From NCBI GenBank assembly GCA_964304625.1, contig OZ199839.1, forward strand, positions 9,376,528 to 9,440,527: a DNA stretch of 64,000 bases, read 5' to 3'. Both the position numbers and the translations under genes were made by a program. Below are positions 1 to 54,125 of this stretch, in pieces. The DNA comes from Kudoa neothunni. Taxonomy: Eukaryota > Animalia > Cnidaria. The notes under the pieces are model-generated. The model made no database searches, was not told the DNA's origin, and was given only the letters and a program-made list of their open reading frames with translations. How positions within the stretch are numbered: the stretch's first letter is position 1; the number at the start of each line of letters is the position of its first letter.

Positions 1-2756
1 TTAGCGACAAACTTTCCACCATACCACAAATAACGTTACAAGAGTGAGTGCAACTGCGGATGATGTTGTGGCGTATATAATTCTAAAAGAAGTTAAAAGT
101 TTTTATTTTTAAATCATTACATTGTGGTTTTCGATCTAAAATAATATTAAAATAAATCGAACAACAGTTAGTTACATTCCACTGGAAACACTTGAACTCT
201 TTCCTAAAAAATAGGGAAAATCAAATTAGTTTTTAGAAAACGATTTTCTTATACCCAATCTAATTTCGGCCACACCATAATAAGATGGTTTATCCTGGAC
301 AAAAACGTGAAGATGATAGTCGGTAACATCACGAATATTCAATATTTCGAAATTTTTGCATGCTTGAAAATCGGCACAATCAACTTTATTATCGAATGTG
401 CAGCGTTTTATTATTTGTCTCTCTGCGGTGCTCAAGTAACTCAAATACCAACCACACTGTTCTTCACTATCAATCCCTTTTGGAAGACTCAAGCTAACAT
501 TAAAAGTAGTCCCATCACGATTAATTATAACATCTATTTTCTTTGAATTATTGGTAGGAAATGGTGGCAATGATTCTACATTCGAAATAACAGCAATTTC
601 CAACGACAAATTAATAACTAGTCAATTACTTGGATCTATAGTTAACCTTTGTTCATAGGTATTTTGATATGCTAAAACCGCGATTAAATATTCTTCGTTT
701 GGATCGTATTGGTGTGTGAAAACAATATCTGTGCAGAGTGACGCGTAAGTACAGGAACCTACATCGGTATCTATTCTCTCTTCGTTGACCACAGCGGAAA
801 ACAAAGAATCCATTCCAACCGGGCACTCGAAAACAAGTTTATGCTTCCCAAATTTTTTTAGCCATATTTTGTAGAAGCAGGTAACAGGCCAATTAACTAT
901 ATAATTATGAGCTTGTGCAAACAACCTGAAGCCGTCATTAACGTAAGCTTTTCTTAGATTCATACGATGACCTGCTATAAAATCACTATTTAACCATTTA
1001 TTAATTTAATATAATACGAGTTTGAAAATTGTAAATATATTCGTCATGGCTGGCAGCAACAACCACTTTCAAATCATAGTTACTAGCTCCTCCAACCGAT
1101 AAGAACATTGTATAAGGGGAACAGTCTTTTATACAGGGATAACTTTTGTTACACATAGTGTCGTAAAACATATTCTTATTTGCTTCACTGAGATAGAAAG
1201 TACACGAAAAAGGCACCTTTGGGATGCCGTAATTTATATGTACTCGGAACGTTACAATTGTTGTTTTCAGTAAATCAAAGTAGGCTCTGAAAGAAGAATT
1301 TGGATGCTTGCCTACTATACAATTAAATAAGCTATGTTATTTTTAGTTACGTGTTCGAAAGAAAAGTCCCTCGACGAAATTTAACTCGGTACCCATGCTA
1401 ACAGTAATATTAACTTTGTAGGGCCTTCCAGAAGATAGTCCAGTCAGGATCTTTTTATTATTGCATCTATTATCACAAGGCAAACCATTATCACATATCG
1501 CGGTTGTGAGAGAATCAATCGACGGAGTGGGTTTGTCAGCCTCGTACACCTTGACATCACACCTGGTAAAGGGGCTAACGTTGCGGTCATTTTTCAACAA
1601 ACTCAAATCCAATTCCACTCTGTTGTGGTATTTATGAAATAGCTGGTTCCCCATATTCTCTTCATTTCTTCTAATAACTAAATATTTAATCACTAGGTAT
1701 ATTATTTGAGATTTTTATATACCAAACTTGGACTGTCTTAATCCAATGGAGTTTTGTTTTGTTTTAATCATAACCTCAACAACAGGGAAATAATTTGACA
1801 TAAATAATGAGACATTTTTAGAGGGAGCAACACACTTGGTATCGCCTTTATTTCCACAGTTTGATTCAAATTCATTCTGTTTGGGATTTGGAGCAGCATT
1901 TCTAATATAAAATTCGTATATTTCTGGCTGATAGTTGTTCAAGAATATAATGAAGTATTCTGCGATTGAACCTCTAGGCTTGTATTCGACGTAAAAATTG
2001 TTGCGAAAAACTTCTATATTATTTCTCATATACACATTTGGCATGTAATAATAAAACGGAGGATGGGATGTGTAGTTTATCTTATAATAGGGTGCCATAA
2101 CATTAAAATCTAGTCGTATAGGATCGCAATCTACACTTTCTTCCAAACCATAGTATTTACGGTCGTTATAGTATACTCTGCATTCAAGCGGAAAAAATGA
2201 AATGATTCTTATTACGAGATCCAAATTTATTTTACTTATTATGAATTTTGGATGCCATAACATTGCTAAATTTATTGTATAATATTAAATTTCAAAGAAT
2301 ACAATATTACGAATCGACAAGCCATAAACTTTCCCGCCACTGCTATTGACAATATCTAATGCATTCAAATTTTCAATTTTTTTCACATAAATATAGTTAG
2401 TTCTAGGAGAAATAGAGGAAAAATCTAAAATCAGGTCGTCTCCCTCACAAATTTTGATACATTTTCGAGCTGTGGTCCCCAATTTGTTGGGACAAACATC
2501 CAAATCTTCGTATCGAGACATCCTATCGTTTGCTTTTTGAATATAGCAGTATTTTCCTGATCCATAATATTTTCCTTCAAATTTCAATTTAACTGCAGAG
2601 TCAGTAATCGTGTATAAAAATGTATTTTTCGTTTCTGTTTCATCTGCATCTACTGTAACAGTGGTTCCAATCACCAATTTAACAATTGAATCTTCATTCA
2701 TTATAAATACATAATGTTAAATTAATTTTCTACTTACATAAAATTATATATTTCAT
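1..2756 (-). CDS. Paralogue A: Cys-rich FN3-like type I membrane protein, 10 exons, about 790 aa
   Basis: Exons 2756-2738, 2691-2311, 2265-1723, 1692-1351, 1314-1018, 974-630, 575-255, 203-176, 135-121 and 82-1 join in frame through GT-AG introns of about 30-54 nt (2373 nt total). N-terminus MKYIILYSIVKLVIG is signal-like. FN3-type motif LTGLSSGRPYKVNITV. C-terminal TM IIIYATTSSAVALTLVTLFVVWWKVCR* ends at the stop at 1-3. Confidence 0.85.
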
Positions 2757-3984: not shown

Positions 3985-6900
3985 CCCTCTAAATCACATA
4001 AATATTTACACCTTCCGAGCAAAATTGGGGTTTAAATCCACAACAGGTTTTTTTTCAATCACATTATTGGAAAAGAATAAGTAACTATTCCCGTGTAATG
4101 AGAAAAGTCTTTGTCATTGCATTATCGAGTAATTAACGAAAAAATACTGTCTCCGTGTGTGTGGGTTGCTTGGATATTCCGGCGGTCGGATAAATTTACA
4201 TGAAGCAATTAGTGCTTAACCCTATACGTACGAACAAAATTGGCCAGTTCATTGGAAAATTAAATACTCACATAAATTTTCAAATAAACAAACTAATATG
4301 TGTAATATTTATTACACTAGTTAAGACAAACACATTTCGATTGTGTTTGGAACGAAAACTAGCAAAAATTCCACACTTGACGGAAGTTTTCTTTTCATTT
4401 TTTCTCTCACATAATCGGAATCTACCTTGAACAGTCGTTTCCCGCTCCGCAATAGGTCTAATGTAGGGTTGAATACTTTGAATTTTTCTCAATAGCAGTG
4501 GACATATCATTTGCTCAGACATCATTTTCGAGAAATCTCTCCTAAGGTTTACAGAAGAGAGAGTTCTTTGAATATGAAAAAATCATTTATCAAGGTAACA
4601 CCAGTCATATTGAAAAATACAATGAGTGGCTAACGACGATTGATTCTTCTGATACTAATCCACGCCAATAACCTTGCGATGGTGTCAAATCCCTCATTTT
4701 AACGCATTATACCGCAACACTATGTCGGGACTAAATGGCGTTTCAACTGCAATATGAGACTTACTTGGAGATCAACAAAGCATATAGATAGGTTTATTCT
4801 TCCTCGTTAAATACCTTAATATCATCCTTTTGTTGTTAAATAAAAAAAGAGATGAATGTAACGGGGTGTCTCTTTGAGGTCGTAGATAGAATGGAGAATC
4901 ACGTTTGTTCGCACGTATGATTCCAATAATTGTAAGTTTTCTACTGAACAATTCAGCAGCTTACTCTCAATTGACGTAAAAAATTTGTCACAAACAATAT
5001 TCCGCCTAGAGCTTATGAATGGGTCCTTAAGTTGCAAAACAAAGTTTTTTCTAAGATTAACAGTTCTTATGTCATTCTAGGACCGCTTACCCGAGTAGTC
5101 GGACAAGTTGCAAACATATGTTGATTTAGGATAGTGTTTCCCTACAGGGGATGCGAGAGTCGTTCAAGAATAAATTTAAAAATTTATCTTAGTTTATTCA
5201 TTTCGTAATTTTCGTTAGTCCCCGTTAAAATCATATAAGGACGTAATGCGTAAAATAATATTTCTGGTGGTTTTGATATCAATCAGTTTCCATTTCAAAA
5301 TGGGATTTGATAATTAATTTAATTTATAATTTATTCTGTTTGATTCTACTAAATAGCCCAGTAAAGTAATAATTTATATTAAGCCTGTTCAACCTACAAA
5401 ATCTAATTTTCGCTATTTTCATGAAAAATCGTAACTTTGTTATCTTTCAAAATAACATACTTATATTCTTAAGCTGTAATTAGGTTGTCAGCATTTTTAT
5501 CTACTTAGAAATAATCGATATCCATAAAAATAAAACCACGATGTAATTTTAACTTTGTCTTCTATCTAAATTTGAGATCTTTCATATAATTGTATAGTTT
5601 ATATTATGTTACGTTTCAAGTTTTACTTTTGAATTTGTACCTTATCTCTGATATAAATCTAAATTAAATTGTTCTTAAAAATGTACGTAAATAAATGAAT
5701 GCCAATTTTAACAATATACAAGAGTTATTTTATTTAAGTGTATTTAGAAGGCATATTTTTTGAGTTTATTGAATTTTTATTAACCCACCGCTTCAAAATC
5801 TAAGTGAACGTATGACTCAATATAGAATAAGGAAGTTGCTAGGTTTATTCAGCACAGGATAGCATATGAAACAAGCTTATCGACTTTATTATATACAATT
5901 AATTTGTATTGGAATTCATTAAACCCCGAAAACGATTTTCATGTTTCGCAATCCAACAAGATGTCCTGTTTTGAATTACTTATGAAAAACCGGCGAGACC
6001 AAGAGAGCCGCAAAATCAAATAAATACTAAATGACAATTGATTCTGAACTAACGTTTCTTGGGAACCGAAAGAATTGGCTATTTTTTTTATTTTTATAAT
6101 TTAATATTACTTTTATATTTATTTTTTGCCTCTAATATTTTGGAATAATTATAAAAACATAATTTATTACATTACATAAAAATAGTACACATAAGCAGGA
6201 ATGAATAGTAACTCCAATCATTGAGTGTTAAGTCATGAGGAGTGATAAGATAATGTTCATTCTTTTTCATATATAAATAGCAAATTGAGTTAACTAAAAC
6301 ATTATGGTTTTAATTTATTTTATAAGTAAATGGGGAAATTTGTGAGTTAAAATATAAACTAAAATAATAAAAATTTTAATTTTAAAACATTTTTCATTGG
6401 TATTGTAATTTTCGCATTTAAATAAAATGTATAACTGAGTTTTGACATTCACATGGAGGAGGGAGTGCGAAATGAACGAGGAAATTAGGATGAGGGTATG
6501 GTTCTAAAATTTGCAGAGAAACATTGATCCAGGATCAACCAATAAAAAAATTCCAATATCTGGTAGGTTTCATCGGCATATACTGCTTCAATTTGCAGCG
6601 ACCTCTGAATGCAACAAGTTGTTCATCGACGCAAAGATCTTCATATCGGCGAAAGCTACGATTAAGTAAATCAACTCCAATTTTCCAAACATCTCCTATA
6701 TGACAACATTTGTCATTAACTTTTACCAGGTCTCTGGTTTCTGAGTCATCAAAGTGAAATGCCCGTGCAATTTGCCGGAACCTTGTTAATGACAAGAGAT
6801 TGCGGTATATTTTTTGGCCTTCTTCAGATCCAAACAATTCCTTAACAAGTTCATTGACATCGCTTTATATGCTCATTAAAAATAAGCATCCAATGAAACA

Positions 6901-7579
6901 ATTTAGTTCGGTTTCGTCTAATTTTGTCCTTATTGATTTGTTAATTTTAAAATCAACTTGAACATATCATGATTAAATAACATTTTAAAAGTATCAGTAG
7001 CTTCGTTAATATTTTTAAATATGTAAGGAGAAACGTCTGGACGATTATTTATAATATTTTCAGCTGACGTTCTAGAAGCTATGAGTTTTTCAGCTGCCCA
7101 TAGCATTCCATATTTATTAACTAATGAGTCTAGTGGTAAAATCTTCATTATCTGATGGTATATTATCATCAAATAAGAAATCATAATCAGAGGAATCAGT
7201 ATTAATTAGAACTGTAATCACAAGAACTCATTACTTACCGCGCTTGCGCATTCAATAAATTTTATAAGTTATTGTCAATTTAAGGGTTATTGAATGATTA
7301 GAATTATCTAAAAAGATATAAGTATATTCCCTAGAATATTTTAAATAATTTTATCAGAAAAAACTTTGGGGTGTATTTATACCCTAATTTTATTCGGAAG
7401 TTGTTTGATCTTTTATTTAAGTCATAATACAAAAAAATGAAATTTTGTTTTCGCGTTTTATGTATTAAATAAGTTTTGATGACTAGCGGAAACATGAATT
7501 ATATCTATCGCGTTTGCAATGGGATAAATTGTCATCGACAATCTCCTAGGCTGGAATCCACCCTATTTTACTCTGAAGG
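3985..7579 (-). mobile_element. Decayed piggyBac element with transposase pseudogene, interrupted by a hAT-type insertion
   Basis: TTAA then CCCTCTAAAT left end. Minus-strand fragments carry piggyBac motifs CVDEQLVAFRGRCKLKQYMPMKP (6535-6837) and RNIVCDKFFTSI (4822-5037), plus a Cys-rich tail near 4280-4525. Frameshifts and stops present. Confidence 0.85.
5132..6526. mobile_element. Non-autonomous hAT-like element nested in the piggyBac transposase
   Basis: Imperfect TIRs tagtgtttccctac / gcagagaaacattg and a degenerate 8-bp TSD (atttagga / atccagga). The transposase reads on across the junction (..LIDP|KSTYVCNL..). Confidence 0.65.
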
Positions 7580-9499: not shown

Positions 9500-9500
9500 T

Positions 9501-9529
<29 letters not shown>
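9500..9529. repeat. (TA)n microsatellite
   Basis: Direct reading. Similar tracts occur near 13420, 29655, 30505, 38408 and 43167. Confidence 0.9.
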
Positions 9530-9531
<2 letters not shown>

Positions 9532-9609: not shown

Positions 9610-12600
9610 ATGAGAATTTATATTTTGTCTATTTTTTTTAGTAAATATCATTGATTTGCTAAACAGAAAATAATATATGTCTAGTCATAGCTGTGAAGTC
9701 GATTCGCGTTCATCTCAACGGTGCACATAATATTTTTCTCTACACAATAGTCAGTGACAATCAAATATGTAAGGTATGGATGAGAATGAACATAAAGAAA
9801 TATACAAATCCATCCTGCTACCTGAAAAGCTTAATATTAGTTGAAACCGGCCATAGAAATATTCCTTGGTTTGAGGGTGATGTTGAAAATTCCGAGAATC
9901 ATAAAGATTTTGATTGTGAACTTGGCACCAATATTACATATAGGATAATGCCAATCCAAATTATTTATATCGTTGTGTTATTTACCGAGTACATTTCTGA
10001 GACATTGGTATCAGATAAATTTCTATTTGGATTTCCAACACGTAATAAGTTTTATAAATTGAAATAAATTATCTAAATTATGCTAGCACCTTTGCATTAT
10101 CCTAAAATAACTATCAAGAATGATCCATTGCATGTCTTATTTGAGGTTAATTCGTGTGTTCCATTCGCGTTGATTTGTTCTCTCTTTTACCAAAAAAACA
10201 TTGATTTTACACCGTATACAACTAGTCAACGCCATCAAATACTAAAGGTTTTGAAAAAAGATTTTGTGACCTCTATTCCATATAATGAATTAAGATGTCG
10301 CAAACAACCGACCTACTTTTATTATATATCGGAAAAATATAGAAGACATAACGTGGAAGTGTATAAACCACAGTTCCATGTTACTTATGTATCTTCAACC
10401 GAACTAAATAAATATAACCTAATATTTACAAATATTATTTCTGCTGATATTTGTCACTTCAGCATACGATCAGTAGCAAAGATAGATGAAAGTGATTTCT
10501 CATTCATATCTCGTTGTGGAGGCAGCACCACTACCAAAGAATGTTATGCTCCCTGCAGAGATGTTCAACTTGAATCCCCGAGAGCTCCCATAGTTGAAAT
10601 AATGATAAAAACAAGAAACGACGATTTTTACAATAATTCATCTGGATATTTTTACAAAAAATTTGGTATGATATATTCATTTTAATTCTTAACTCATTTA
10701 AATTAGTGTTAAACGAGATATCAATCAACAAAAGTGCGCTGGTGCATAATATTGGAATAAATCAAGTGAGATTCAATGCAACGCTGTATAAGCCAAAAGA
10801 TGCTGTTGACAAATTTGAGAAGTGTACGATTGTAATTCGCAGAGCAAATGAAATAAATACTTGTTTTGATTCAAATGATCCTTGCCATATACATGGGCAT
10901 TATATGTGTCCCAATGATTGTAGTGAATTTAGCATAATCACACCTGAGTCAGGCTACCCATATGTAATACTTATGAATTCAACTGTTGCAAATTATTACA
11001 CATACATGGAAGTGATATTTTTCCACTCAAGTAACGTCATATACATATATCAATTTAAGTTATGATTTATAACATTTTCTAAGAAAGTTACAAGTCCTTA
11101 TCAGACTTTTCAATGTCCGCGGCTGATGAGAATCAAAGATTCAAAATTAATCTGATCGCAGATAGATTCCTTTCATACAATCAACAATATTGTTCATATT
11201 ATATAAGTTTAATGGAATCCAACTTGTTTTATGAAGCACAATGTTCTATGATCGATTCTTGTAGTGGATTGTGTGGAAACGGAATTATAATTAAAAACAT
11301 TATTCCAACAGCTGATTATAAAATTAAAATATTATCTTACGGATACAGGGAAAAAATTATAGATTGTGAATTAATTTTGTCTGAAAAATTTTATATCTAT
11401 TAAAATAGATAAGGGATCTATTAAACTGACCTACCGCTTTGTTAAAGAAGGAGTTGATATTTTTGGCGTGTTTCCCAATGCTGATGCTCCATTAATCAAA
11501 TGTTATTATAACATCTATATTGGATCGAAGAGGAACATTTTTAATCTAATTTTTGACTGTACTCCATTGGGAGTAAAAATAAAACCCACAGAATATCTTG
11601 ACTACGAATTTGACGATAACATCAACAAGAAGTTAGGTGGATGTTCATTTTTGCCTTTTTGTTCAAATATTAACTTTATTGACTATTACGAGCCAAAATC
11701 GACTTATGTCATTTGTGTGAAACCGGAAAAGGAACCGTCAGATTCAACCTGTATAACAATACCTTCAAGTATTTGAAATTTTCTTATTAAATAACTAAAT
11801 AACGTAAATTAAACGTTTCCATTTGCATGCTTATAATTTATACAAAAATATTAATGTAAAGATTTCCCATACAATTTTATTGAGTTAAGAATAGAAAATA
11901 ATTATTATAACTGAATTAATAAGAATACTCTATTATGAATTATAGTTTAAAATGAATATTTTCCTATTCGCCCTGATCCACAAATTTTTTCCTCATGAAT
12001 ATTTTTGTAAAATTATTTCTATGAGTAATTTCTGTTTGAAATAAAAATATATACGTTTTATGTTAAAATATAATATTTTTATATTAACCCTCTAAAGATC
12101 ATAAAAATGACTTATCTTCGGCGATCATTTGAGGCGGAATTGACCCCACATTTTTATTTTATTTTTCTTTACTAAAAAATAATTTGTTTCAATTTATATA
12201 ATATGTAAGAAATCTATGGTGGAATTTTGAGTAAATAAATGTTTACTAACCAATTGATCTTCGATAATCCGTTAATGTACAGATTCAGACGATTTCCCTA
12301 CATATCGTTAATATTACATACTGTGGAAATGGCAGCTTCATTCTGAAATGAGATTCATCTATAATCACTAATTTAATGATGATAGTTATAATAATGTTAG
12401 AGAAATTTTACTGAAATTAAAACAAACATAAAAGGTAGCTTTATGACTTTGTGTACATAAAAAATAACGCATTCCAACGTTCACCCATAACATAAGACTA
12501 CCTACGTAATAAATGATGGCTCATGGTTTATGTTTTTAAATTTTTAAACACTTAATGCAACATCTAACTGAAAGTCGATTGCACAATCCGCAAATAACAA

Positions 12601-13419
12601 TAATCAAGCATTGATTTTACTCTCAACGTTTTATAGATTGTTGAGCCTGGCGGAGAGTTCTAAAAAATATTTTCTGCGCTTGTTCATGATGTAGATCTTT
12701 TTGGAAGATTCTAAACTAACCCATATATGCTAATAAATCAATTATCGTATATGTCCAGATCGTCGTCATAAGTTTCCTGAGATATCCTCAGTTATAACAT
12801 CCTCATATTCAATACCAGAAGACTAGTCGTTATGGTATAAAAAATTATATTTAGAATCCATAAGTATTATTCTGATACTAAATTACTACTGAAAGAGAAA
12901 AATATTTTATATTATCTAGTGCGATCGATCGTCAAAATTGTACACGAGCGTTGTTCGAATAAGTTGCGTAAGATTAGTTCACGGATTAATTTTGATTTTC
13001 CTTAGAATTCTGTCGGTGAATTTTTTTAATATCTCACAAAAAATTTAAGTAAATTTATGCACAAACTGATGAAATAAAAAGATGGGGTCGTACCGACCCT
13101 AAATGATCGTTGGAGGTACCCTTTTAATTTTGGCTACATATAAAAACCTAAATTATCCAATTTTCCTCTGTTACATAGAAGAATATATTTATAAAGAATA
13201 TGATGAATTCAAAAACATTGAAACTAAGGGAGAAAAAGTTATACGTTATTCAATTCTATTTTGAGGTCGATTCGACCTCGGTATCATTATATCGTTAGAG
13301 AGTTAAAATATTATTACTAATAATATGGTTTATAAAATTAATAAATGTTAATTAAAAACAAAATATTGAACGAATTACATTAATTAGATTGGAAGATTAC
13401 GTTATCATTATTATCAAAG

Positions 13420-13451
<32 letters not shown>

Positions 13452-14933
13452 AATTATTTTAATGATGAATTACTAGCAACTAGCTACAAATAATAATGAT
13501 AATACGGTGCGTTTATTAAAGAAGTATGAGTTGTTATCTTTGAAGTTTCTGCTATTTTAATCTGTTTATTAGAAATCTGAATGTACTCAATGAAATAAAA
13601 CATATTTTATTAAAAATCACATAAATAAATGTTAAAAAATTAGTCGAATTAAGAAATAATGCAATTTAAATTATAAAACTTAAATTTTATTGTACCATCT
13701 AAAAGTTTTTTTAGAAATATAATAAAATATATGCAGGAAAAGATGTTTTATGAATAAAATTTTTTCAATTATAGAGATATATAATAACCAAATAGTCTAA
13801 TTTAAAAATAATATATTAAGAATTTTGCGACATTAATTAATTGACGAAAAAATATTCTTCGAATTTCTTAAATTTAAATTAAATAAAGAAATTTTAAATC
13901 ATTTCTAGATATTGATTTATTACTTAAAAAATTATTGTATGTAAAATAATGCCATTTATAATATAGGAAATGACAATGTGCAATCTAAACTAATAAATAT
14001 TACAATTAAACAAAATGGCGACTTGCTTCTTGCTTCGGCAAGACTTCCCGACGGAATAAGAAAAGAGGACTCGAGATGTTACTGGGAATTAATAGAAACA
14101 GACGAATCTATCAACAAAACTGTGAAAAAATGTTTGAGACGTAATACACAAGAATGTGATGATGAATTAGAGCCAATATGTTACCACATAATCATTAATA
14201 CTATTAAAAAATCCCATCTTTACACATTGAAGGTTTATTACAGCGAGAACATAGCAATCTACGGCGTAGAAAGCTTTTATTATGTTTTATCAAAAGATCC
14301 AATCGGCCACGAAATAAAAATGGCAACCAATAATTTAAATGTCAGCGTGGAAAGAGATGCCAACCGAATTAAAGTCAGCGTTAAACATTCTAACAGAATA
14401 GATTATACCGATATAAAATGTGTCTGGGTACTAAAAAGTGATGATGTTGTTGAACTAATGCCTGAAAATCAATGCATTCAAGGTAAAAAATTTGAATGTG
14501 TCGGTGTGGCTAATTTTTGCGCGAGATTTTCAATAAATGGTGTTAAACCTGCTTCACAATATAACTTAACCGTTTATTATCGCGAAGATTTAAATTACTT
14601 TGGTCATATTATGATTGATAAATGTATTCAAAATAAATTTTTATACATTTCGTTTGTTTTTATTACTTTAGATAAACCTAATCGAAAAAAAGAATCCAAT
14701 CCGTAAGCATTATTATTTTTATTAATATAATTAATTTATTAATATTTGAATTTGATAGGAAGTATTACATAATTCTTATTCTGAAATTTTTATTTAGGAG
14801 AACGAAAATCGCTGTTGTTTTTTCAATAACGTTTGTTGTATTATTGGCCTCTATTGCGCTACTGTTATATTTCAAAAGATCGTACATTGTGCATTATTTC
14901 AACGAAAACCGAAGTCCTGAACACAACTTATAG
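9610..14933 (+). CDS. Paralogue B: Cys-rich FN3-like type I membrane protein, about 918 aa if the long intron is spliced
   Basis: Exons 9610-9640, 9685-10041, 10087-10665, 10707-11030, 11084-11365, 11409-11768, 13967-14623, 14672-14702 and 14798-14933 join in frame. Signal MRIYILSIFFIIAVKS. Family motifs VYKPQFHVTY and CYAPCRDV. TM IAVVFSITFVVLLASIALLLYF then KRS. The join across 11769-13966 is inferred. Confidence 0.75.
12088..13302. mobile_element. Internally deleted piggyBac-type element inside the long intron of B
   Basis: TTAA TSD on both sides. TIR CCCTCTAAAGAT / ATCGTTAGAGAG. Subterminal GGGGT-n-ACCC palindromes. Confidence 0.75.
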
Positions 14934-31650: not shown

Positions 31651-31654
31651 CGTG

Positions 31655-32100: not shown

Positions 32101-32657
32101 TATAACTCAACAAAATATTATTTTAATTTTTTCTATTGGTTTACTATATGTATTATTACATATTTTAATATTTTTTATCGAAATGTTCTACAGCCTCAGT
32201 AAAGTTAGGAATTCATTTGTTTACAAAAATATTCCAGTTACACCTTTTTATTTTAAAATACTTTATCAAGTAATCACTTTATAAATTTTGAATAATTTTT
32301 TATTATTCTATGAAAAATTTTGAATCTAGTGCTAATGACATTGTTTGTTTTATTTTATATCTAATCGAAAATTCATTAAGTCGTGTCATAATTATTTGAG
32401 CCATACATTTGAAACAATAAATAAAGATTATAAAATTAATAAAATCCAGTAATAAGTTCGATACGCAATTAAAAATTTAAACTTAAGGAATAAAAATACG
32501 AGAAATTAAAATTTAAGTCCCATTTTAAACGCATAAACACGAGAATAATATAATTATCATAGCAAACAATACAAAATATACTTTTCAAATTAATATTTAG
32601 ATCAGTATATTTAACATCAGAAATATAGACCATTTTCAGTCATTTTAAAATTTTTGA

Positions 32658-38562: not shown

Positions 38563-41358
38563 TTAATGGTTGGGCAAAATCATACGTTTCCTCCAAATTA
38601 ACATTAAATACGTAATCGAAAAGAGTAGAACGAATGTGAATAAAATTACGATTATCCTAAAAATAATTTTAAAATTCAAAAATAAAAAAAGTACCTCAAA
38701 TTCTTATTCCTATATAAAAAAATTAATGATTACGAAGGAAGGAAAATTTACCCAGCATTTGAAGCTGCAAATTTATTATCTATATTATTACATAAAGGTC
38801 GTGTAAAAATAACCGGTGCTGAAATTACCTATTATTATTATTTCGGCAATACCATAAATTGAAGGATCCTTTGCCAGAATAACTTGCAGGTGATAGTCAG
38901 TTTGCGTTGGAAACGGAGGAAATATTAAATTGTTCGCATGTCGGGATCTGTATGCAACCAGTTATGTTGTCCATTGTACATCGCTGAGTTATTTTTCTTG
39001 TGCCAATCGCATTCAAATCGCTTAGATTACCACCAGCAATCTCGATTTAGTAGAATCCAGCCCAGGAGGAAGTTTTGATCCTACTATCAATGTATCTCCA
39101 TATCTATTAATTGAAACTTCAATTATTTTTGTTTTATCGGTTTGCAATTGTGGGAACGATTCTAATTTAATTTTAAGTAATAAAAGGCCAAATATTAACA
39201 GATATAATATTCTATATTTCTACTTGGATCTACCGTAAGATTTTGTTCGTATGAAATTTGAAATGGTAGTATTGCTATAAAATATTCTTCCGTAGGATCG
39301 TATTGATGGGTGAAGGTAATATTATTACAGTGAGATACAAAAGAACAATTTTTTACATCGTCCATGTTTAATACATCTTTTTCCATTATTTTAAAAGCAT
39401 GGTCGATAACAGACGGACATCTGTAAACTAGCACAAAAATTTCACCTTTCTTTTTCCAAATTTTGTAGTAACATTGTTTTTGTAGTAAATCAGGACTTGT
39501 ATTATTGATTTCTGCATAAATCATAAAGCCATTATCAATAAATACTTGTTTAAACTTGATATTATAGGCCTCTATTAAATATGAACGTAAAATATAACAG
39601 TTATTCTTGTATTTACTGGTTTTAAAGTTGAAGGTATGTACACCAAAACTATTAGAAGATATAACTTTTAAATCATAATTAGTTGCTGGTTGGAGCGACA
39701 ACATATAAGTCAACGTAGAACATGGTTTTCTGCATGGATTAGCGAAATAAACATTCTGCCTCATAAAAAACTATCCTCACTTGCCCTACTGAGATAATAC
39801 GAGCAAGTTAATGAGAAATGGCTTGTCAAAATATTCGGCTCAATATAAAATATTCCTTCGTTTAGATTAATGGAGGCTATTTCTAACTTGGGTTGTAATT
39901 TTTCCACAGGAGCTATCAAAACTATACAAAAATTTTAAAATAACAATTACTTGTTCTAAAAAATATTGTTTCTATGAAAGTGAAATTGGTTTTCTCAGTA
40001 ACATTTAAGGCAATTATATATGGTCTTCCAGGTGATAGGTTAATTAAATATTTTCGTTGATAACAATCAGTATCACAAGGAGAATTATCATTACAAATAG
40101 CCTCTATAAACGACGTAGGTGAGGGTTTGTCCGCTTCGTGTATCATTATGTTACAACAAGATAAATGACTATCTTGAAAAAAACTTCTCACTAGGGTCAA
40201 ATCTAGTTTAACCCCAAATGAAGAAGGTTCTATCAATGGCTCTCTATATGTGTCGAAATTTCGGAAAATCACTAAAAATATATTATTTATGTAATTTCGA
40301 TAAATACTAGATAGTATGGCGATTTACCTACTTTAGATAAATTAATTCCATGATACTTACGTCTATTTTTAATCGTAATCTCAACAATAGGAGTATAACC
40401 TCTCATAAACAACGATACTCGATTACACGGAGCATAACATTCGCCCGCCTCACTGTTACCACAATTTGATTCATATTGATATTTGTTGTGGTGGGATGTG
40501 TCGCTTCCGTTCCTAATACTGAATTCACATATTTCTGGTTCAGCTTTGTTGGAAAATTTCAGTTGATACTCTGCTTTATCAACTCCGGGTTTATATTCTA
40601 CGTGGAATTGTGGCTGAAAAACAGCTATATTTTTTCGCATATACATATTTGGCATGTGGTAATAGAAGGGTGGATGTTCAATGCAACTCATTTTGTAATA
40701 CGTTATTAACATACTGAAGTCCAGTTCGAATGTGTCAAAATCGTAAGTCCCGTTCAAACCATAGCATTTCAAAGAAGCACAAGAAACTGAACAAGTGTAT
40801 TGTTTTTTAGTTATTTTCAGCATCAATGATGACTTTTTTGTATTTATTTTAAATCGTGGATAGATCAAAATGGCTAAAAAAGTATTATATACAACATAAT
40901 TAATCATGGTTACGGATAGTCAGACCGAAAACGATTGCACCCTGCACTGTTGAATCAGCGGAATTTATATTATCAATTCCCTGGGTTAAAATGTATTTTA
41001 ATCTTGGATACATTTTTGAAATGCCCAGTGAATAACTTTGTCCTTGGCAGTTCGTAGCACATATATCCCTTTGATGAACTGATTTATCGCTGCAGATATT
41101 TTCCTCCGAAAACCTCATTTGATTTTCATTCGCCATGCTCAACTGACAAATAGATTGTTTTATCCCAATTCTAATGTTTAGTCTCAGTTTCAGCCTGGAA
41201 CCAGTGCATTTATATTCAAGCACATCTTTAGCTTCTTCGTTCTGATTAGTTACCATATGAATGCATATAAAAATAAAATCTAATATACAAGAACAATTAG
41301 TTAAACATTAAATTAAGTTCTTACAGACTACAATGAATTGGTAATATGTAAAAATCAT
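38563..41358 (-). CDS. Paralogue E of the FN3-like surface protein family (a few single-base insertions)
   Basis: Signal exon MIFTYYQFIVV. Collinear exons, 28-nt and 15-nt micro-exons, TM IIVILFTFVLLFSITYLMLIW then RKR. Extra bases near 39750-39770 and 39028. Confidence 0.8.
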
Positions 41359-41712
41359 TAATATTAATTAATTGTTAATAATAATATTATATAAATTAAA
41401 TATACTTATTGCCTTAATAATAAGCGTCGTGATTAATCATAATAAATCTAACCAAATATAGTCATTAATCCTAGTAATTATTTTAATCACATTATATGTA
41501 ATTCTTTATTAATTTGTTAGTTTAAAAATGGTGTCACAATAACAATAATAAATTATAGAATAATAAAATTAGCTTAAAATAAGAAATATTAAGAATACTT
41601 CCTATTAGAAAAAATAATAGTAAAATTAAAGATAAATATTTTATTTTCATGGTAATTAATTTTATCACAGGCTTGTTTACCTTTGAATATCAAAATTATA
41701 ATGTTTTGTCAA

Positions 41713-44090: not shown

Positions 44091-46861
44091 TTATTTGAAT
44101 CGTTTTCGCAAAACTACCACCAAACATATTGTTGAGACGAGAAAAAAAAGTGGGATTAATATTAAAATTAACCTAAAACTTTTTTTAATAATATCAAAAA
44201 ATATATTACATTGAATTTTTTTTTCTAGTAATAAAATAATAGAATGCACATTAAAATAAAAATACTTAATGTTGGACTTTGCAAATTTTTGACCTACAAA
44301 TAATAATAAATTACGTGAAATAAAGGTAATAGATATAAAATTGCCCTTATATATTTCTACAGTACCATAAATTGAAGGATCTCTTTCCAAAATAACTTGC
44401 AGATGATAGTCAGTTGTATCAAATACGGAAGAGATGTTAAATTGATTACATTTTGATATTTGACCGCATCCAGTTATGTTGTCTACTGTGCATCGTTTAA
44501 GAATCCTTCTCGTACCAGTCGCATTCAAGTCGCTTAGATACCAGAAGCATTTCGAATTGATGATATCTATTCCGCGTGGAAGACTGGATTCCACCATAAA
44601 AGTATTTTCAATTCTGGTAACTGTAATTCCAATAATGTTTGATATATCTGTGGGAATGGGAGGAAACGACTCTATTTTAATTCCAAATAATTATTAATCA
44701 AATTATACCTGAAATAATGTAATACAATTATACTTGGATCAACCGTTAAGCTTTGTTCATACGAATTTTGAAATGGTAATACTACGATCAAATATTCTTC
44801 GGATGGATCATATCTATGAGTGAAGGTGATATTTTTACAAGGAGGAACTTGAATGCACGATCCTGCGACTTCCACGTTTAACACTTCGTTATCCATAGTT
44901 TTAAATTCAATAGCGTTAGAAGAGGGACATCCGTACACGAGGAGATTACTTCCACCCTTTTTAACCCACACTTTGTAATAACATTCTGCTTGCTTTAAAT
45001 CAAGACTTGATGTGTCTTCTGCATAAATCATGAAGCCACTGTCGATATATTTTTGTCGAAACGTAATATTATGAGATTCTACATGATGTGATGATTAAAT
45101 GATTAATCAAAGAATTATTCACTCGTTTTAAACCTAAAAATATGCTCACCAAACTCATCAGAAGTAACCACTTTCAAACTGTAGTCTGTTGCCGGTTGGA
45201 GCGACACAAAATAAGTCAATGTAGAACATGGTTTTCTGCATGGATTGGCCGAATAACAAACGGCCTCATAAAAATTGTCTTCGTTGGCCAAACTGATATA
45301 ATAGGAGCATGTGATGGAAAAATCAGTGACTAACACATTGGGCTCAATGTAAATCAAACTTCCATAATGATTTCTCAAAATTTCTTTAGCTTCGGGGTGC
45401 ACATGTATTCCAAAAGCTATCACAACAGTGAAATCGTTTTATAATAGAAATTACTTGTTCTAAAAAATAGTTTTTCAGTGAATCTGAAGTTATTTTTATC
45501 GGTAACATTGATGAGAACAATATAAGGTCTACCCGATGGTAAATTTACTAAATATTTTATGTTGTCGCATTCATTATCACAGGCAAGGTTTTTGAGACAT
45601 CTGGCTATCTCTAACGCTTCTATTGATGGACTAGGTTTGTCGGCCTCGTATATCATGAAATTGCAATAAACAAAATGGATATCTTGATACAATCGTTTCA
45701 GTAGAGTCAAATTAAATTTAACATAATTTGACGAAGGTTCTAACAATGGGTATCCATAAGTCTCGAAATCCTTCAAAATTACTAAAAAAATATAACTTTG
45801 AGTTAATAGTTATTTGAATTCAATTTATATACCAAACTTAGTTCGATTGTCTACATTGTCATTATGTCGGGTTTTAATCAAAATATCCACTATCGGACTA
45901 TAACCTTCCAAAAATAATGAAACGTCTTTGCATGGAGCTAAACATTTCCTATCCTTGTTATTACCGCAATTTGACTCATACACATTGTCGCCAGATGTGT
46001 CACCTCCCTTTCTAATACTGAATTCACATATTTCTGGTTCAATCTTGTTTGAGAATCTCAGTCGGTATTCGTTGTTTTCATTCTTATTCATATATTCTAC
46101 GTGGAATTGTGATTGATAAGCGTCAATGTGTCTTCGCATATACAAATTTGGCATGTAATAAAAGAGTGACGGTTGTTGACGGCACTTTATTTCATAATAG
46201 ATAGCCATTATATGAAAGTCAAGTTCAAAATTGGTTCTATCCGAAGTAGACCCCAGACCGTAACATTTTAGCGAATTACATAAAACCGAGCAAGACATTG
46301 GAATTTTTTTAACTTTTATTATTAAATTTGAATTTTTGGTTCCAACCTGATATTGAGGATATATTAATGTTGCTAAACATTTTTGTAAATGACGAATAAT
46401 TATTTATGTTTACGCAGAGGTAGACCATAAACGGATCCAACATTGGTGATATGACTGGTAATGTTTAGATTGTCAGTTTCTTCTATCAACATATACTTTA
46501 TTCTTGGATACAATCTTGAAATTTCCAGTGTAAAACTCGATGATTTGCACTTTGTTGCACATATTTCACTCTGAAATACTGATTGATCTTGGCAAATATT
46601 CCTCTTAGAGAATTCGTTCTTATTCTCTTTTGAAAAATATAACTGGCAAACAGTTTTTGCTACTTCGATATTCATATTTACTCGCAACCTTAGCTTATAA
46701 CCGGAATATTTGTACTCTACTTCACCTTTTGCTTCACCATTCTGGCTGTTTATCCATAAAGTGGATTGTGTAATATAGTCTAAAATGTTTCTTTATAGAA
46801 GAAAGAAAATAAAATTTATAAACTTACATAATAAAATATGTAGGGAATATGAAGATATCAT
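44091..46861 (-). CDS. Paralogue F: apparently intact FN3-like type I membrane protein
   Basis: Signal exon MISSYSLHILL. Exons match the ORFs at 46400, 45825, 45420, 45115, 44672 and 44091. FN3 motifs NLPSGRPYIVLINV and SLQPATDYSLKV. Micro-exons 44266-44293 and 44210-44224. TM LILILIPLFFLVSTICLVVVL then RKRFK*. Confidence 0.85.
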
Positions 46862-47689
46862 TAAAAAACATTACAAATTATTATTTTTAATAGGATTAAG
46901 TTAATTAAGTTTTATTAATGTTACCAATGGGTAAAAGTATTAAATATAATTAATTTTTATATATTTACGAACTTTCCGTATTACATTAAAACACTTTTAA
47001 CGAATTACATTCATATCTTTTAAAATAATAATCCATATTCAAAAAATATAAATAGGAAAATTCAGGAAAAGTATATTAACAAATATTTAATTGAGAAAAA
47101 TGGAGAATAGGGTAAACTTTCCAATCATACACTTCCGTTAATTAAAGTGATCTTTGTAAATATTCGCCAAATTCCCTTACTCTATACTAAGAATATAAAC
47201 CTTTTAGTATAATAAATCAACTCGATTACTAATGAATTTATGTCATACAATAGGAAAGGAATAAATTATATTTTTAATTATTAAATATTTATTTTCTCAG
47301 TAATAACATACTTTAAACAACTAATCAAATGCGGTATATTTAATTTTTAATTCAACAAAATATTAGATTCCATAACTAATTAAAAAATGTTGTGGAAGGC
47401 ACGATTTTTATATAATCGTATAGATTATACAAAACCTTTAAAACATGCACTTAAAATTTATTATGCTTTAATAAAATAAAGGATTAAAAGAAATCTTAAA
47501 CTAAGATACATTCAAATTCATAATATAAACAATATCATTTTTTATACAATCTTATTAGGTGACATTTTGTGTGTAATTTTTTTCATTGATAACTATTCTA
47601 CAGATAAAATTATTGTTATTTAATATATTGAGAAACATATCAATTTATAATAATTTAAAATAATAATTTTATTGAAAACAATTGTTATT

Positions 47690-49576
47690 TATCGGGTAAA
47701 TCTCTAAGTCTGACTGTGTTTGTAGCATCCTAAAATTTGCTACTTTTAGCCATATTTTCCAATTTTTTATGATGAAACTTTTAAAGCGTTTATTATTCAT
47801 ACGAATAAGATTGTGAGTTTTTCATTACGATAGTAAATGGAAAAATCTTCCTTCAGCGAAATCTGAATTATATATATGTTTATCTTTAAATACAAAAATG
47901 GAGTCACTAAGAAAAATGTGTACCTTGAATTAATTATGCGATATATTTCTTAGAGTTATTACACTAGAATAGTCCTATTCAAAAAAATAGAAGTCCTTAC
48001 TTTGGTGACTATGAGACGAGAAATCGAATGTTTTGCCTTTTAACTAATGTTTTCAACTGATGGAAAATTTAATACCGATGTGTTTAGTTCCTTTTGTTAC
48101 TCTTACTGTCGATGAAACACATAGTTACATTCAGAGGAGAGTGTCCCTTTAAGCAGTATGTGCCCTCTAATCCTGTATTTATTAAATTAAATTTTTTTTT
48201 CCAGACCTTCAAAACAACTATACATAAGATTTCTGTTTACCATAGAAGAAATAATAACCAAATCACAAAGTTAAATGTATTTGTGAAACATTATCTGATA
48301 ATTTTTCATTTCGGTTCCGTTAGCGAACAAAAATCTTAACTGTCAACACTCCGAGGGACTATTTGGAATCATGTACTAGGTATCTTACAAATTCTTTAAG
48401 CTAGTGAATCAAAGGCGAATATTAGTTCAATTTTCCTTTTACATGATAGGAAAATGATGATGTCGCATGTTCAAAAAAACGACAAGTGGTCATTTTATGG
48501 GCTAGATTATTACACAATGTAAATTAATGTCAAGTTCCGTCAAAAAAAGCTTCCGATTATCATCGCAATAAACAAAAATAAGGGTGATATGGTTACGGTA
48601 AATCTTGTTTTGTCTATTGAAAGTGTAAAAAGAATCGTTGTAAATAGTTAACATAATAAAAATAATACTTTATAATATGGTTGAAATAAGTTTACTTAAT
48701 TCATTTTATTTATATATAAGTTAAGTAAATCAAACCAATATTCGTAGAAACAATTATTTATAGTAGCTTGTGGAGTCGTGAGTAAATCCTACTTAATATA
48801 ACTATGCTGATTTCTGCGAATAAAATCTTAAATTCTATGACGGAAAAAAGATGCAGCTCATGCATCGATTCTTCTATGTAAAATTAAAGAACAAATCGTA
48901 TGATTTCTTCAAATGTTATAACAATAAATATTTCAGAAATATTCGTTACGAATACGTAAGAAAAAAATGTGAATTAAAATTTAACTATTTGAATATTATA
49001 TTTTCTTAATTAATTTTTATCATTTCTAAAAAAATTAATATTAATTCATTGATAAATAATTACGAATCCATATTTTATTACAAATAATTGATATGTGTGC
49101 TAGCCTAATCATCCATGTGCCTGATTATTTTAATATTTATAACAATATTAGTTTAAGTATATAATATTTTAAATTATTTTAAAATCCAATGAATAATTTT
49201 TACAATAAAAAAATCAGATTCGTGTTGTTTCAAGATAACATATGTATTTTCATTTATTATTATTAGTTTAATTTCCTCTGTCATCCTAAAGAGTTCTGGA
49301 TAATACTTAAAAAACATCAAAAGATACATTAAGAAATAATTTTATTATTATGTAAATACTGCATACTCCAAAATAAACGATCGAACGGTTTTCAGTTATT
49401 TTCGCCTGGTAGATTAATTAGGATGTTGTTGTTAATCGGTTTGAAAAAACTCCCCTACGAGCGAAATAATATTTAATAATATTTTCTATCAAAATATATA
49501 AGAATTTAGAGTTCCCCTTTATTCTAAATCTCCAAATACTTCAGGATGTACAGTCGTTTTGGGGATATTTGAATGG
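47690..49576 (+). mobile_element. Heavily decayed piggyBac remnant (left boundary approximate)
   Basis: DETxVTFRGECPFKQYVPSNP and YNMVEISLLNSFYLY remnants. The right end ..GAATGG-TTAA resembles the other family ends. Confidence 0.7.
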
Positions 49577-51143: not shown

Positions 51144-51336
51144 TTAAATATATTCACCGCACTTTTTTAATAAAAATTATATTAATCGTATTTAATTAAT
51201 TTAAGTGGATTTTAATAAACTTCATTGCAATAAGACATTCTCTACCAATAAATGTGTGAAAAACAAGATGAGTGAACGATGTTATTTCGTAATTAAAATA
51301 ATAGTTTTAATCTTATTATTTCGATCCTCAAAAATT

Positions 51337-54125
51337 TTAATGGCGTTTTTTACACCAACAACAGAGTATTACAACAACACAAATAATAACAGCAATCCCG
51401 ACGGCGCCAATTATTCTAAACCAAAAATTATTTCACTCGCACATTACATCCAATACATGTAGGTTTTAGAACTATAATAATAATAATAATAATATAAATT
51501 ATAAAAACAAGTAAATCAAAAAATGCGATACCCAAGCAACCTAAAAAATTCTCCACCTGATATATAATTAATCAGCAACGTATTATATTAACTAAACTCA
51601 CCATTTACAATTTCTATCACACCATAAATTGAAGGAGTTTTCTCCAAAAACACATGTAAATGATATTCAACACTTTTTTGTCAATTGTGTAATATTGAAT
51701 TTTTCGCATGGCAGTGAATCCGCACATTCCATTCTATTGTCAGAAGTACATCTTTTGATTATATTTCTATCAGCAGTGTTCAGCAAACTCAGATACCACA
51801 AGCATCTAGAGTTTTTGTTCACTTCAGGGGGCAGCTTAATTTTCTACACGCAGAGTAGTGTCTTCACGTTTAACTTTAATATGTATTTTCTTTGAATTAT
51901 CTGTTGGAGTTGGAGGTAGTTTCTCTAATTATTTATATGTTCAAAGTGTTACAGACGATAAAAATTCTTACTTGGGTCTATTGTGAATAGTTGATCGTAA
52001 AAATGATGGAACGATACTACTGCTATTAAATACTCTTCCAAAGGGGTTATAGTTGTGTGTATAAGTGATATGTGAGCACATTGACACTTGAGTACAACTA
52101 GGTGTGGTCTCATGAATTTTTTATTTCTTCGTTCTCTACCGCTTTAAAACAGTGAGTCCAATCCCGACGGACAACTATAAACAGACACATTTTTCCCAGC
52201 TGTTTTAAGCCATACTTTGTATTGACACAAGGCTGTATCGGCGTTGAAAGTAGTTCTATAAGGTGTTCGTAACTGGAATCCGCCGTCGACAAAGGTTTTT
52301 CGAAATTCAACTTTATACGGGGCTATAAAAGTTATTTCTATTGCGTCATTGAAAAGAATACGATATATTACGTGTTCGGAACTTTTTCAAGTGTATACCA
52401 TTGTCATCAGCAGAAATCACTTTCAAATCATATTCGGTTGCCGCTCTCGTGGTGAATATCCTGGTTTGTGTATTGCAAAGTTTTCTACAAATATTACCCT
52501 CTTGACAACCAGTCTCCACAAACATATCTTTGTCTGCCAGACTGATGTAATAGGCACATGAGCGCGACACATTTTTAGTTATATGATGTGATCTAGTCGT
52601 CAATGTTACGGCTTCACTAGTGACATAGAAAAATTCAATAGATAAAAATCCATTAGGATGACTGTCTATAAAGAATACAATAAAATCACAAAAGGTTTAA
52701 ACATTACTGGTTCTAAAGAAAAGTTTCTCAGTGAAGTTATAATTGTTTCCTAATTTAATTTTCAGGGAGATTATGTATGGTCTTCCGGGTAATAAACCAG
52801 GAATCCTCTTAACATTGTCGCATCGTTTATCGCAAACAACGTCGTTGTTGCAATAAACAGTAGTTAACGACTCCAGAGATGGAGGGGGCTTGTCAGCCTC
52901 ATACAATCTTATATCACACTCAACAAATAAATTGTCAAATTCGACTTTTCTCAACAAACTCAAATCAAGTTGAACACTATTATATGTGGGTTTAATTAAT
53001 AAAATTTTGCTAGAGTCATTCTCGTTAAAAATCACTATAAAATATTCACTTAAATAACAATTATAAATATTGTACCAAGTTTTGTTTGTTTAAATCCGCT
53101 GAGGTTGTTTTTTGTTTTTATTAGAATTTCTACGATAGGAACATGCCCAGACATGTACAATGTGACGTCCTGGCATGGAGCATAGCAGGTTTTATCGTCT
53201 TCATTCCCGCATTTTGATTCATATATGGAGTAATTTTTTCGGACAGGTTTACTTACATCTCTAATACTAAATCCACATATTTCTGGTGCTGCTTTGTTGG
53301 AGAACTTTAGCGTGTATTCAGCACGCTCATTTCTACGCGTGTATTCCACATGAAACTGGGGTTGGAAAACGTCAATCTTATTTCTCATGTACTGATTAGG
53401 CATGTGATATAAGATTGGAGGAAGTCTTAGACAACTTAAAAGATAGAAAGGAGCCATAATATGTAAATCAAGTTGAATATTGTGATAATCTGCAATTTCA
53501 CCTTCACCAGAGTAAACACCATTGTAAACCACCTGGCACGAAAGGCCTTCCAACTCCGAAATTCCTATTACAAGAGCTGTATTACTTATGTTTATTTTAA
53601 AGCAGGGAGACAATAGCAACGCTAACAAATGGTAATATACATCAACAACAACGTAGTCATACGAATATGTAATCCATAAACTTGGCTATTGATGGGAGAA
53701 GCTTCAATATTAGATGTTGGCTCATCCAACGTTTGTACGTATGTATATTTTGTGTTCGTTGAATATGTCTCAAGCATAAAATTTGTACCGACCTCTTCAC
53801 ATTGACGAATACACCTTCTATCGGAAGAATCTAACTTATTTGTACAAATAGTTTCCTCATAGCCGTTTTTATCTTGATTGCCTATTCTTAGGTAACAGTA
53901 TTTGTTGGAGGGATAATTGTTTCCATGTAATTTCAATTCCATGACGTAATTCATGAGATTGTAGACGAGAGTGTTATTTTGTGAATGCAAGTTAGTGCTC
54001 ACATAAGTCAAAAATCCACAAAGCAACCCTTCAAATATTTGCATTTATTAGTTGTCATAATTCAATTATCGAAACTTACATATATTAAAATATTTTGAGT
54101 ATGTCTTAATCACCCCAAAGCTCAT
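51337..54125 (-). pseudogene. Paralogue G of the FN3-like surface protein family (3' exons frameshifted)
   Basis: The first four exons are open (MPNQYMRNKIDVFQPQFHVEY, GLLPGRPYIISL). Several indels lie in 51600-52650. A 15-nt micro-exon is at 51457-51471 and the TM is IIGAVGIAVIICVVVILCCWCKKRH*. Confidence 0.8.

Follow-up and report, generated by a model that had tools for sequence, protein, structure and literature searches.

The 64,000-nucleotide stretch of Kudoa neothunni DNA analysed here (the window) contains seven members, three of them broken, of an undescribed family of several hundred predicted single-pass membrane proteins built from cysteine-stapled fibronectin-III-like (FN3-like) domains. 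At least 150 exons for the second domain (D2) were confirmed genome-wide, among 384 candidates. The family is a strong candidate for the surface coat of this tuna-muscle parasite, although this role, like splicing and expression, is inferred from sequence and predicted structure alone.

Seven paralogous genes in the window

The initial annotation described a cluster of seven genes with a shared exon plan, and this observation was confirmed. Seven clusters of stop-free frames occur in the same D1–D6 order between positions 1 and 54044, and a D2 profile matches all seven copies at E 1e-65 to 8e-90. Each gene has six domain exons joined by short phase-1 GT-AG introns, followed by a transmembrane (TM) exon and a tail of 4–24 residues. 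Four copies (G1, G2, G3 and G6) appear intact while G4, G5 and G7 carry frame breaks inside domain exons. The features are as follows:

1–2716 (−): G1, apparently intact; open frames D1 2288–2716, D2 1718–2284, D3 1346–1714, D4 1004–1336, D5 625–1005 and D6 229–621; terminal TM exon 1–82, tail KVCR, with the stop codon ending at base 1; 5' signal exon not located.
6538–6864 (−): piggyBac-type transposase remnant between G1 and G2 (DDE_Tnp_1_7, E 1e-14), not part of the family.
9610–14933 (+): G2, apparently intact, G2/G3 subtype; D1 9663–10064, D2 10077–10682, D3 10637–11062, D4 11083–11400, D5 11375–11773; then an intron of roughly 2.2 kb, one exon with two D6-type domains (13945–14703) and a TM exon at about 14798–14933 (tail 19 aa); candidate start at 9610.
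16432–21611 (+): G3, apparently intact, same subtype as G2; D1 16475–16864, D2 16764–17507, D3+D4 17519–18229 (the intron reads through in frame), D5 18223–18627; then an intron of roughly 1.9 kb holding a piggyBac-like fragment (judged from its translation only), a double D6 exon (20488–21300) and terminal TM exon(s) at about 21415–21611 (tail 23 aa).
32617–35408 (−): G4, probable pseudogene; same domain order, with frameshifts inside D2 (near 34740–34760) and D3 (near 34270–34290), both in T runs; TM exon 32617–32754 (tail about 24 aa).
38563–41650 (−): G5, pseudogene; D1 40903–41307, D2 40290–40919 and D3 39925–40323 open; D4 frameshifted at about 39765 (one extra T in a T run); D5 within 39198–39566; D6 split over three frames (38791–39219); TM exon 38563–38703; good signal-peptide candidate at 41650.
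44091–46871 (−): G6, intact reference copy; exons 46871–46828 (start and hydrophobic N-terminus), 46790–46414 (D1), 46372–45833 (D2, two subdomains), 45781–45455 (D3), 45416–45123 (D4), 45078–44734 (D5), 44671–44266 (D6 plus stalk) and 44172–44091 (TM, tail RKRFK, stop); 804 codons in total.
51337–54044 (−): G7, pseudogene; D1 53625–54044 (starting with Met plus a hydrophobic run), D2 53053–53685, D3 52700–53089 and D4 52349–52696 open; D5 split over several frames (51952–52386); D6 fragmentary (51600–51843); TM exon 51337–51426 (tail CKKRH).
61321–62872 (−): degraded piggyBac-type transposase gene downstream of the cluster (DDE_Tnp_1_7, E 4e-29), not part of the family.

A full model was derived for G6, comprising 8 exons and 7 GT-AG introns of 37–93 nt, with all introns between domains in phase 1. 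When its exons were joined the reading frame was uninterrupted over 804 codons, with 29 Cys and 9 N-x-S/T sequons. For searches and for folding, exons were treated one by one. Cysteines form the main invariant columns, while overall identity to G6 is low: D1 16–42%, D2 32–53%, D3 19–52%, D4 23–52%, D5 23–56% and D6 24–54%. A signal exon was located for only five of the seven copies, those of G1 and G4 being weak or unlocated. The micro-exon stalk proposed in the initial annotation remains putative, since in G6 this stretch reads through in frame without any micro-exon.

Predicted fold and sequence relationships

AlphaFold models support the FN3-like reading, though only D6 and D2 were folded. 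The D6 model (pLDDT 91) has seven strands. Its 50 best structural (VIA) matches are all FN3, with Z 8.0–9.1 and rmsd 2.2–3.5 over 82–96 residues, and the top Foldseek hits are likewise FN3. The large D2 exon is predicted to fold as two tandem beta-sandwiches (pLDDT 78), its best matches being two-domain cytokine-receptor modules and tandem FN3; the C-terminal half matches FN3 at Z 5.5–6.8. The tyrosine-corner motif L-x-P-x-x-x-Y-x-h-x-V is present in D4 with close variants in D1, D5 and D6. An invariant Tyr occupies this position in the alignments of these four domains, whereas D3 carries G-x-P-Y in most copies. Searches of the ESM Atlas by features gave a score of only 0.81, with FN3, Ig and cytokine-receptor neighbours, which we treat as a lead; searches by shape returned generic FN3/Ig sandwiches.

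At the sequence level no relationship to a described family was found. No exon gave a Pfam fn3 (PF00041) hit at E up to 10, nor did any of 42 D6 sequences at E up to 0.1, and a profile search against PDB gave only fibronectin at E 0.35–0.46. One exon hit Pfam DUF7862 at E 2e-5, but this did not hold up, since only 2 of the 42 D6 sequences matched, at E≥0.04; no paper mentioning this domain was found. An Rfam scan of the window returned nothing. The different domain types do not match each other significantly (hhalign probability 0.1–5%) although their cysteines line up. Common origin of the six types therefore rests on fold and cysteine order.

Outside this genome, a search of 1.84 billion proteins gave only 16 unannotated exon-sized ORFs. 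The G2/G3 type has a relative about 51% identical in another organism. The same D1–D6 order, with no D5 match scored, occurs in a contig from another organism (L003), a distant one whose SNF5 exon is only 44% identical. The paper describing the assembly (PMC12239612) does not mention the family, nor did we find it in the other literature searched.

Family size and divergence across the genome

The assembly comprises 40.26 Mb, with scaffolds of 17.15, 12.04 and 11.05 Mb, an 18.2 kb fourth contig and a single (TAAACC)n end, as reported in PMC12239612. The orthonectid Intoshia fits in nuclear size and GC, but its mitochondrial genome is 79–84% A+T against 56% for the fourth contig (C4), and an HSP70 search gave only 73–78% identity to assorted animals. 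The family is far larger than could be seen from the window. There are 384 candidates for D2 and 311 for D6, and all 150 scored for each are at E≤8e-38 and E≤1e-19, respectively. Arrays occur on all three chromosomes, some within 15–70 kb of scaffold ends, and include 68 kb–1.0 Mb and 9.7–11.03 Mb of the 11.05 Mb scaffold and 16.3–16.9 Mb of the 17.15 Mb scaffold. The D2 exon is highly conserved across the whole family, with eight Cys positions in most genome-wide copies. Roughly a quarter to a third of the scored D2 matches contain a stop, some of these lying at match edges.

Young arrays include one at 9.79–9.87 Mb of scaffold C2. The D1–D6 order is repeated in 10 genes of a neighbouring, young array. 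Since the window copies (16–56% identical) are too diverged for synonymous distances, selection was measured in this array. Pairwise NG86 dN/dS medians are 0.28–0.43 per domain exon, with a maximum of 1.04, and only 5% of pairs, in one exon, exceed 1. Values of dS are 0.43–0.53 in D1–D3 against 0.05–0.08 in D5a/D6; that is, membrane-distal domains are about ten-fold more diverged at synonymous sites than membrane-proximal ones.

Possible roles and related systems

The interpretation in the initial annotation, that this is a lineage-specific and rapidly diversifying surface family analogous to parasite variant antigens, is partly supported. The FN3-like fold, a four-Cys pattern which is not canonical FN3, single-pass topology without a signalling tail, and the absence of a described family are all supported, as is restriction to this lineage. 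The parallel with parasite multigene families gains weight because the genome is that of a parasite and the family has several hundred members. Rapid diversification by positive selection is not supported by the whole-domain dN/dS values, while surface location and mutually exclusive expression remain conjectural.

With moderate confidence we suggest that these are members of a lineage-specific multigene family of type I membrane glycoproteins of the myxozoan parasite Kudoa. Each would have an N-terminal hydrophobic leader, a rod of seven or eight beta-sandwich domains of FN3 topology, most carrying four conserved cysteines which probably form two disulfides, a short stalk, one TM helix and a basic tail which cannot signal on its own. 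We regard it as shown or strongly indicated that the family grows by tandem duplication of phase-1 domain-exon genes and decays by frameshifts, and that in young arrays the membrane-proximal half stays nearly identical while the distal domains diverge. In this view the seven window copies form an old, long-branched subfamily. That the proteins are expressed, sit on the plasma membrane as a glycosylated coat or adhesin layer, and bind host or parasite ligands through the variable distal domains is inferred. A host-facing surface or adhesion role is the best reading, but Kudoa plasmodia live inside muscle fibres, so a host-immune-facing role is not self-evident.

Myxozoans are economically important fish parasites with drastically reduced genomes, and their host-interface molecules are almost unknown. 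If most members are real genes the family could amount to several per cent of a gene set annotated at about 5,300 proteins (PMC12239612); members may have been missed by hint-based gene prediction or masked as repeats. If real, it is the obvious first candidate for how Kudoa attaches to, enters or hides in fish tissue, and would be a source of diagnostic or vaccine antigens. It adds a clean example of FN3 domain-exon genes evolving by birth-and-death with partial homogenisation.

Other roles might be considered. Structural or cell-cell adhesion proteins of the parasite's own body plan, such as spore valve or suture components or the interface between primary and enclosed secondary cells, would be consistent with moderate purifying selection and the conservation of D2, and FN3 rods with short tails are typical of adhesion and matrix proteins. 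However, hundreds of diverging paralogues are hard to explain for a purely structural role in an organism with so few annotated genes, and distal-domain divergence suggests varied ligands; we consider this doubtful. That the copies are mostly dead DNA, a burst of decaying gene fragments of the sort counted as repeats, is very unlikely. Three of seven window copies are broken, some genome-wide D2 matches contain stops, and 45.6% of the assembly is called repetitive (PMC12239612), but dN/dS is 0.28–0.43 rather than about 1, and cysteines, aromatic core residues, exon phases and splice sites are conserved across the copies. The open G6 model and the retention of the architecture in the distant organism also argue against it.

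A true antigenic-variation system, with one or a few genes expressed at a time on proliferative stages exposed to fish immunity and with silent arrays and pseudogenes as a reservoir reshuffled by gene conversion, is possible but unlikely on present evidence. The several hundred copies in tandem arrays, some near scaffold ends, the pseudogenes, the variable distal and homogenised proximal domains and the very short basic tails, as in Giardia VSPs, are in its favour, and another myxozoan genome paper proposes variant surface families for immune evasion (10.64898/2026.02.11.705288). Against it, whole-domain dN/dS is below 1 in every domain, the window subfamily is old and has the relative about 51% identical noted above, the muscle stage is intracellular, and exclusive expression is purely hypothetical. 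Were it nevertheless so, with gene conversion keeping the membrane-proximal scaffold uniform while distal domains diversify, this would be an animal parasite's independent invention of VSG/var-style antigenic variation, a reading we likewise hold to be unlikely.

Parasite variant surface families (Giardia VSP, Trypanosoma VSG, Plasmodium var/rif/stevor, and the VSP- and RIFIN-like families reported for the myxozoan Sphaerospora molnari) are, like this family of putative surface proteins, large, lineage-restricted tandem families of Cys-containing surface proteins with minimal tails, pseudogenes and arrays near chromosome ends. Fold and sequence are unrelated, there being no VSG or DBL folds. 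The CXXC repeats and conserved CRGKA tail of Giardia VSPs were not seen; in the alignments inspected by eye cysteines recur in a spaced four-Cys pattern, and tails differ between copies.

With the FN3 domains of metazoan single-pass adhesion and receptor proteins such as LAR-type phosphatases, sidekick, Dscam and titin, the family shares the predicted seven-strand sandwich, the tyrosine-corner-like motif, one domain per phase-1 exon and tandem rods anchored by a single TM helix. It differs in its four conserved cysteines per domain, where canonical FN3 has none, in lacking a cytoplasmic domain and in its expansion to several hundred copies in one small genome. Class I/II cytokine-receptor modules (gamma-c, TSLPR, GHR, IFNGR) are the best Foldseek matches of D2; the predicted D2 sandwiches would likewise be cysteine-stapled FN3 domains, and D6 has a C-x-W motif. 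These matches are weak (E about 1e-3, TM 0.37–0.45, Z about 6), cysteine order differs, there is no Box1/Box2 tail or sequence similarity, and no WSXWS motif is visible in the alignments inspected. Taeniid oncosphere antigens (EG95/45W/TSOL18 family) are parasite surface or secreted proteins built on FN3 domains with a C-terminal hydrophobic anchor. The parallel is by analogy, no sequence relation having been seen; they carry one or two FN3 domains, form small families and occur in flatworms.

Gene architecture of the window

The window has about 28% G+C and contains no N. Based upon an analysis of stop-free frames on both strands, seven gene-like clusters were resolved:

G1, 1-2716 (-)
G2, 9610-14933 (+)
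G3, 16432-21611 (+)
G4, 32617-35408 (-)
G5, 38563-41650 (-)
G6, 44091-46871 (-)
G7, 51337-54044 (-)

Each cluster presents the same order of six domain-sized open frames, D1 to D6, separated by very short gaps, and in this respect the observation made in the initial annotation, that seven genes share one exon plan, is real, although several of its details require adjustment. Reading G6 base by base gives a model of eight exons, the seven predicted introns of which begin with GT, end with AG and are 37, 41, 51, 38, 44, 62 and 93 nt long. All introns between domain exons are phase 1. When the exons were joined for the purpose of counting, they gave an open frame of 804 codons with 29 cysteines and 9 N-x-S/T sequons, which has a hydrophobic N-terminus and ends in a TM helix followed by RKRFK. 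Short phase-1 GT-AG introns are available at the corresponding places in G1, G2 and G3, the one exception being the D4-to-D5 junction of G1, where no short canonical intron was found.

Every copy has a single convincing TM exon downstream of D6, with tails of 4 to about 24 residues. No TM candidate was found in the long introns of G2 and G3 or in 3 kb of neighbouring intergenic DNA. The stop codon of G1 ends exactly at base 1 of the window. A start codon with a hydrophobic leader was located for G2, G3, G5, G6 and G7, but not for G1 and G4, so that the signal exon assigned to all seven genes was recovered in five.

Unlike the other copies, G2 and G3 form a distinct subtype in which a 1.9-2.2 kb intron follows D5 and a single exon encodes two D6-type domains. 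The D2 exon is double-sized and carries eight conserved cysteines. The “micro-exon stalk” of the initial annotation rests on sequence alone: in G6 the supposed 21-nt intron (44294-44314, -) is in frame and free of stops, and can simply be exon. The predicted 93-nt intron before the TM exon (44173-44265, -) is also in frame and free of stops, and its retention, which is said to be common in myxozoans, would therefore still yield a TM-anchored protein with a longer stalk.

Three of the copies are interrupted. G4 has two frameshifts, in D2 and D3, both in T runs; G5 has one in D4 and at least two in D6; and G7 has a fragmented D5 and D6. Since the Kudoa neothunni assembly was built from HiFi reads with a reported QV of 48.5 (PMC12239612), G5 and G7 are very probably real pseudogenes, and G4 probably is.

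Conservation and predicted fold of the domains

Alignments of each domain type across the copies show the claimed pattern of conserved cysteines in otherwise strongly divergent sequence. Identity to G6 is 16–42% in D1, 32–53% in D2, 19–52% in D3, 23–52% in D4, 23–56% in D5 and 24–54% in D6. The invariant columns are mostly the cysteines plus a few aromatic and glycine/proline positions. In D6 the invariant set comprises C-x-W, three further Cys, an Ile and the Tyr of Y-x-L-x-V.

D6 exons were collected from across the genome and the G6 D6 exon was modelled with 42 sequences, giving a mean pLDDT of 91, a pTM of 0.83 and seven strands. Foldseek against the PDB returned almost only FN3 domains [E about 1e-3, TM 0.5–0.6], while an independent all-against-all VIA search gave FN3 domains as 50 of the 50 top entries [Z 8.0–9.1, rmsd 2.2–3.5 Å over 82–96 residues]. 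The G6 D2 exon, modelled with 51 sequences, gave a pLDDT of 78 and two tandem beta-sandwiches. Its best Foldseek matches are two-domain cytokine-receptor modules and tandem FN3, at weak scores, and VIA matched its C-terminal half to FN3 at Z 5.5–6.8. The ectodomain would thus be a rod of seven FN3-like sandwiches, or eight in G2/G3, provided that D1, D3, D4 and D5, which share the cysteine order and tyrosine corner, share the fold as well.

At the sequence level no relationship was detected. No Pfam family matched at E up to 0.1–10, depending on the scan, no PDB sequence was recovered, and hhalign does not link the domain types to each other significantly.

Distribution, evolution and interpretation of the family

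The window occupies positions 9376528–9440527 of C2, the 12.04 Mb scaffold of a 40,260,978-base assembly of four contigs. A D2 profile search of this assembly found 384 first-look candidates, of which the 150 scored were all at E≤8e-38, and a D6 profile found 311 candidates, of which the 150 scored were all at E≤1e-19. The hits form tandem arrays on all three large scaffolds (C1, 17.15 Mb; C2; and C3, 11.05 Mb), with the following dense blocks:

C1, 16.3–16.9 Mb
C2, 6.4–11.4 Mb
C3, 0.07–1.0 Mb
C3, 9.7–11.03 Mb

On C3 the arrays reach within 15–70 kb of both scaffold ends. A neighbouring 80 kb stretch (C2:9793001–9873000), which contains 401 N, holds ten genes with the same D1–D6 order, in which D5 is split in two.

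A profile search of 1.84 billion representative proteins gave only 16 hits, all of them exon-sized unnamed singletons from one ENA metagenome assembly and two Logan runs. One contig from another organism (L003, 17% G+C) carries D1-D2-D3-D4-D6 matches in the same order with tiny introns, no D5 match being scored there. That organism's SNF5 exon is only 44% identical to that of the present genome, so the architecture is older than the species. In a 7256-base contig of Logan run SRR31175926 (L001), from a distantly related organism of 21% G+C, a family member (D1 and D2 exons at 6170–7201) lies next to RPS29-like and SNF5/INI1-like genes.

The text of the paper describing the K. neothunni assembly, which was recovered from yellowfin-tuna HiFi data (PMC12239612), makes no mention of surface, fibronectin type III or gene families, and no Kudoa paper mentioning fibronectin type III was found in the literature searched. 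The gene models in that study relied on protein hints from other cnidarians, a procedure which would tend to miss an orphan family, and 45.6% of the assembly was called repeats.

A tree of D2 places the six window copies that were included (G4 was left out of that alignment) in one well-supported, long-branched clade [SH-aLRT 96]. The clade also holds one other genomic copy and two metagenome ORFs, one of which, P0001, about 51% identical, is sister to G2+G3. The window cluster is therefore an old, divergent subfamily rather than a recent burst. In the young ten-gene array, pairwise Nei-Gojobori dN/dS medians are 0.28–0.43 for every domain exon, and no domain is above 1 overall. Synonymous divergence in that array differs about ten-fold along the gene, being 0.43–0.53 in D1–D3, 0.26 in D4, 0.18 in D5b and 0.05–0.08 in D5a and D6. 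Amino acid identity is 65–78% distally and 94–96% proximally. The simplest reading, inferred from this gradient alone, is that the 3' membrane-proximal half is homogenised by gene conversion, or by segmental duplication, while the distal domains diverge.

The interpretation offered in the initial annotation is, in our view, partly supported. We regard as established by the analysis that this is a very large, lineage-restricted family with a conserved four-cysteine pattern, a predicted FN3 fold for D6 and a predicted double sandwich for D2, a predicted type I topology with a minimal tail, moderate purifying selection, and birth-and-death turnover with pseudogenes. Location on the parasite surface, glycosylation, disulfide stapling and ligand binding by the distal domains are inferred, as are splicing and expression. 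On balance, and with no more than moderate confidence, we favour a host- or environment-facing coat or adhesin family. An internal structural or cell-cell adhesion role is possible but less likely, a true antigenic-variation system is doubtful on present evidence, and we consider it very unlikely that these sequences are mostly dead repeats.

Other features of the window and the assembly

Degraded piggyBac-type remnants lie between, and in one case inside, the family genes:

6538–6864 (-), remnant confirmed by Pfam DDE_Tnp_1_7
19383–19607 (+), remnant within the long intron of G3, judged from its translation alone
48088–48336 (+), remnant judged from its translation alone
61321–62872 (-), remnant with Pfam DDE_Tnp_1_7 confirmed within it at 61642–62500

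A run of broken ORFs at 25000–28100 (+) resembles by eye a hAT/GTF2IRD2-like transposase, but three of its ORFs gave no Pfam hit at E≤0.01. Two adjacent ORFs of 199 and 142 aa at 56234–57287 (-) have no Pfam match.

The assembly comprises three chromosome-scale scaffolds, C2 being the middle one in size (reported N50 12.0 Mb, PMC12239612), with about 28–30% G+C and introns of about 40–60 nt. Its fourth contig (C4; 18,219 bases) has very divergent mitochondrial-type ORFs and 44% G+C against about 28–30% in the nuclear genome; it carries a highly divergent COX1-like ORF, and no ORF of 150 aa or more in large parts of its second half. This is consistent with the odd mitochondrial genomes reported for Kudoa, for which sizes of 15.9–19.4 kb have been given in other work. 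Telomeric (TAAACC)n repeats occur at exactly one place in the whole assembly, the right end of C2 (12039536–12040069), in agreement with the report of such a telomere at one chromosome end only (PMC12239612).
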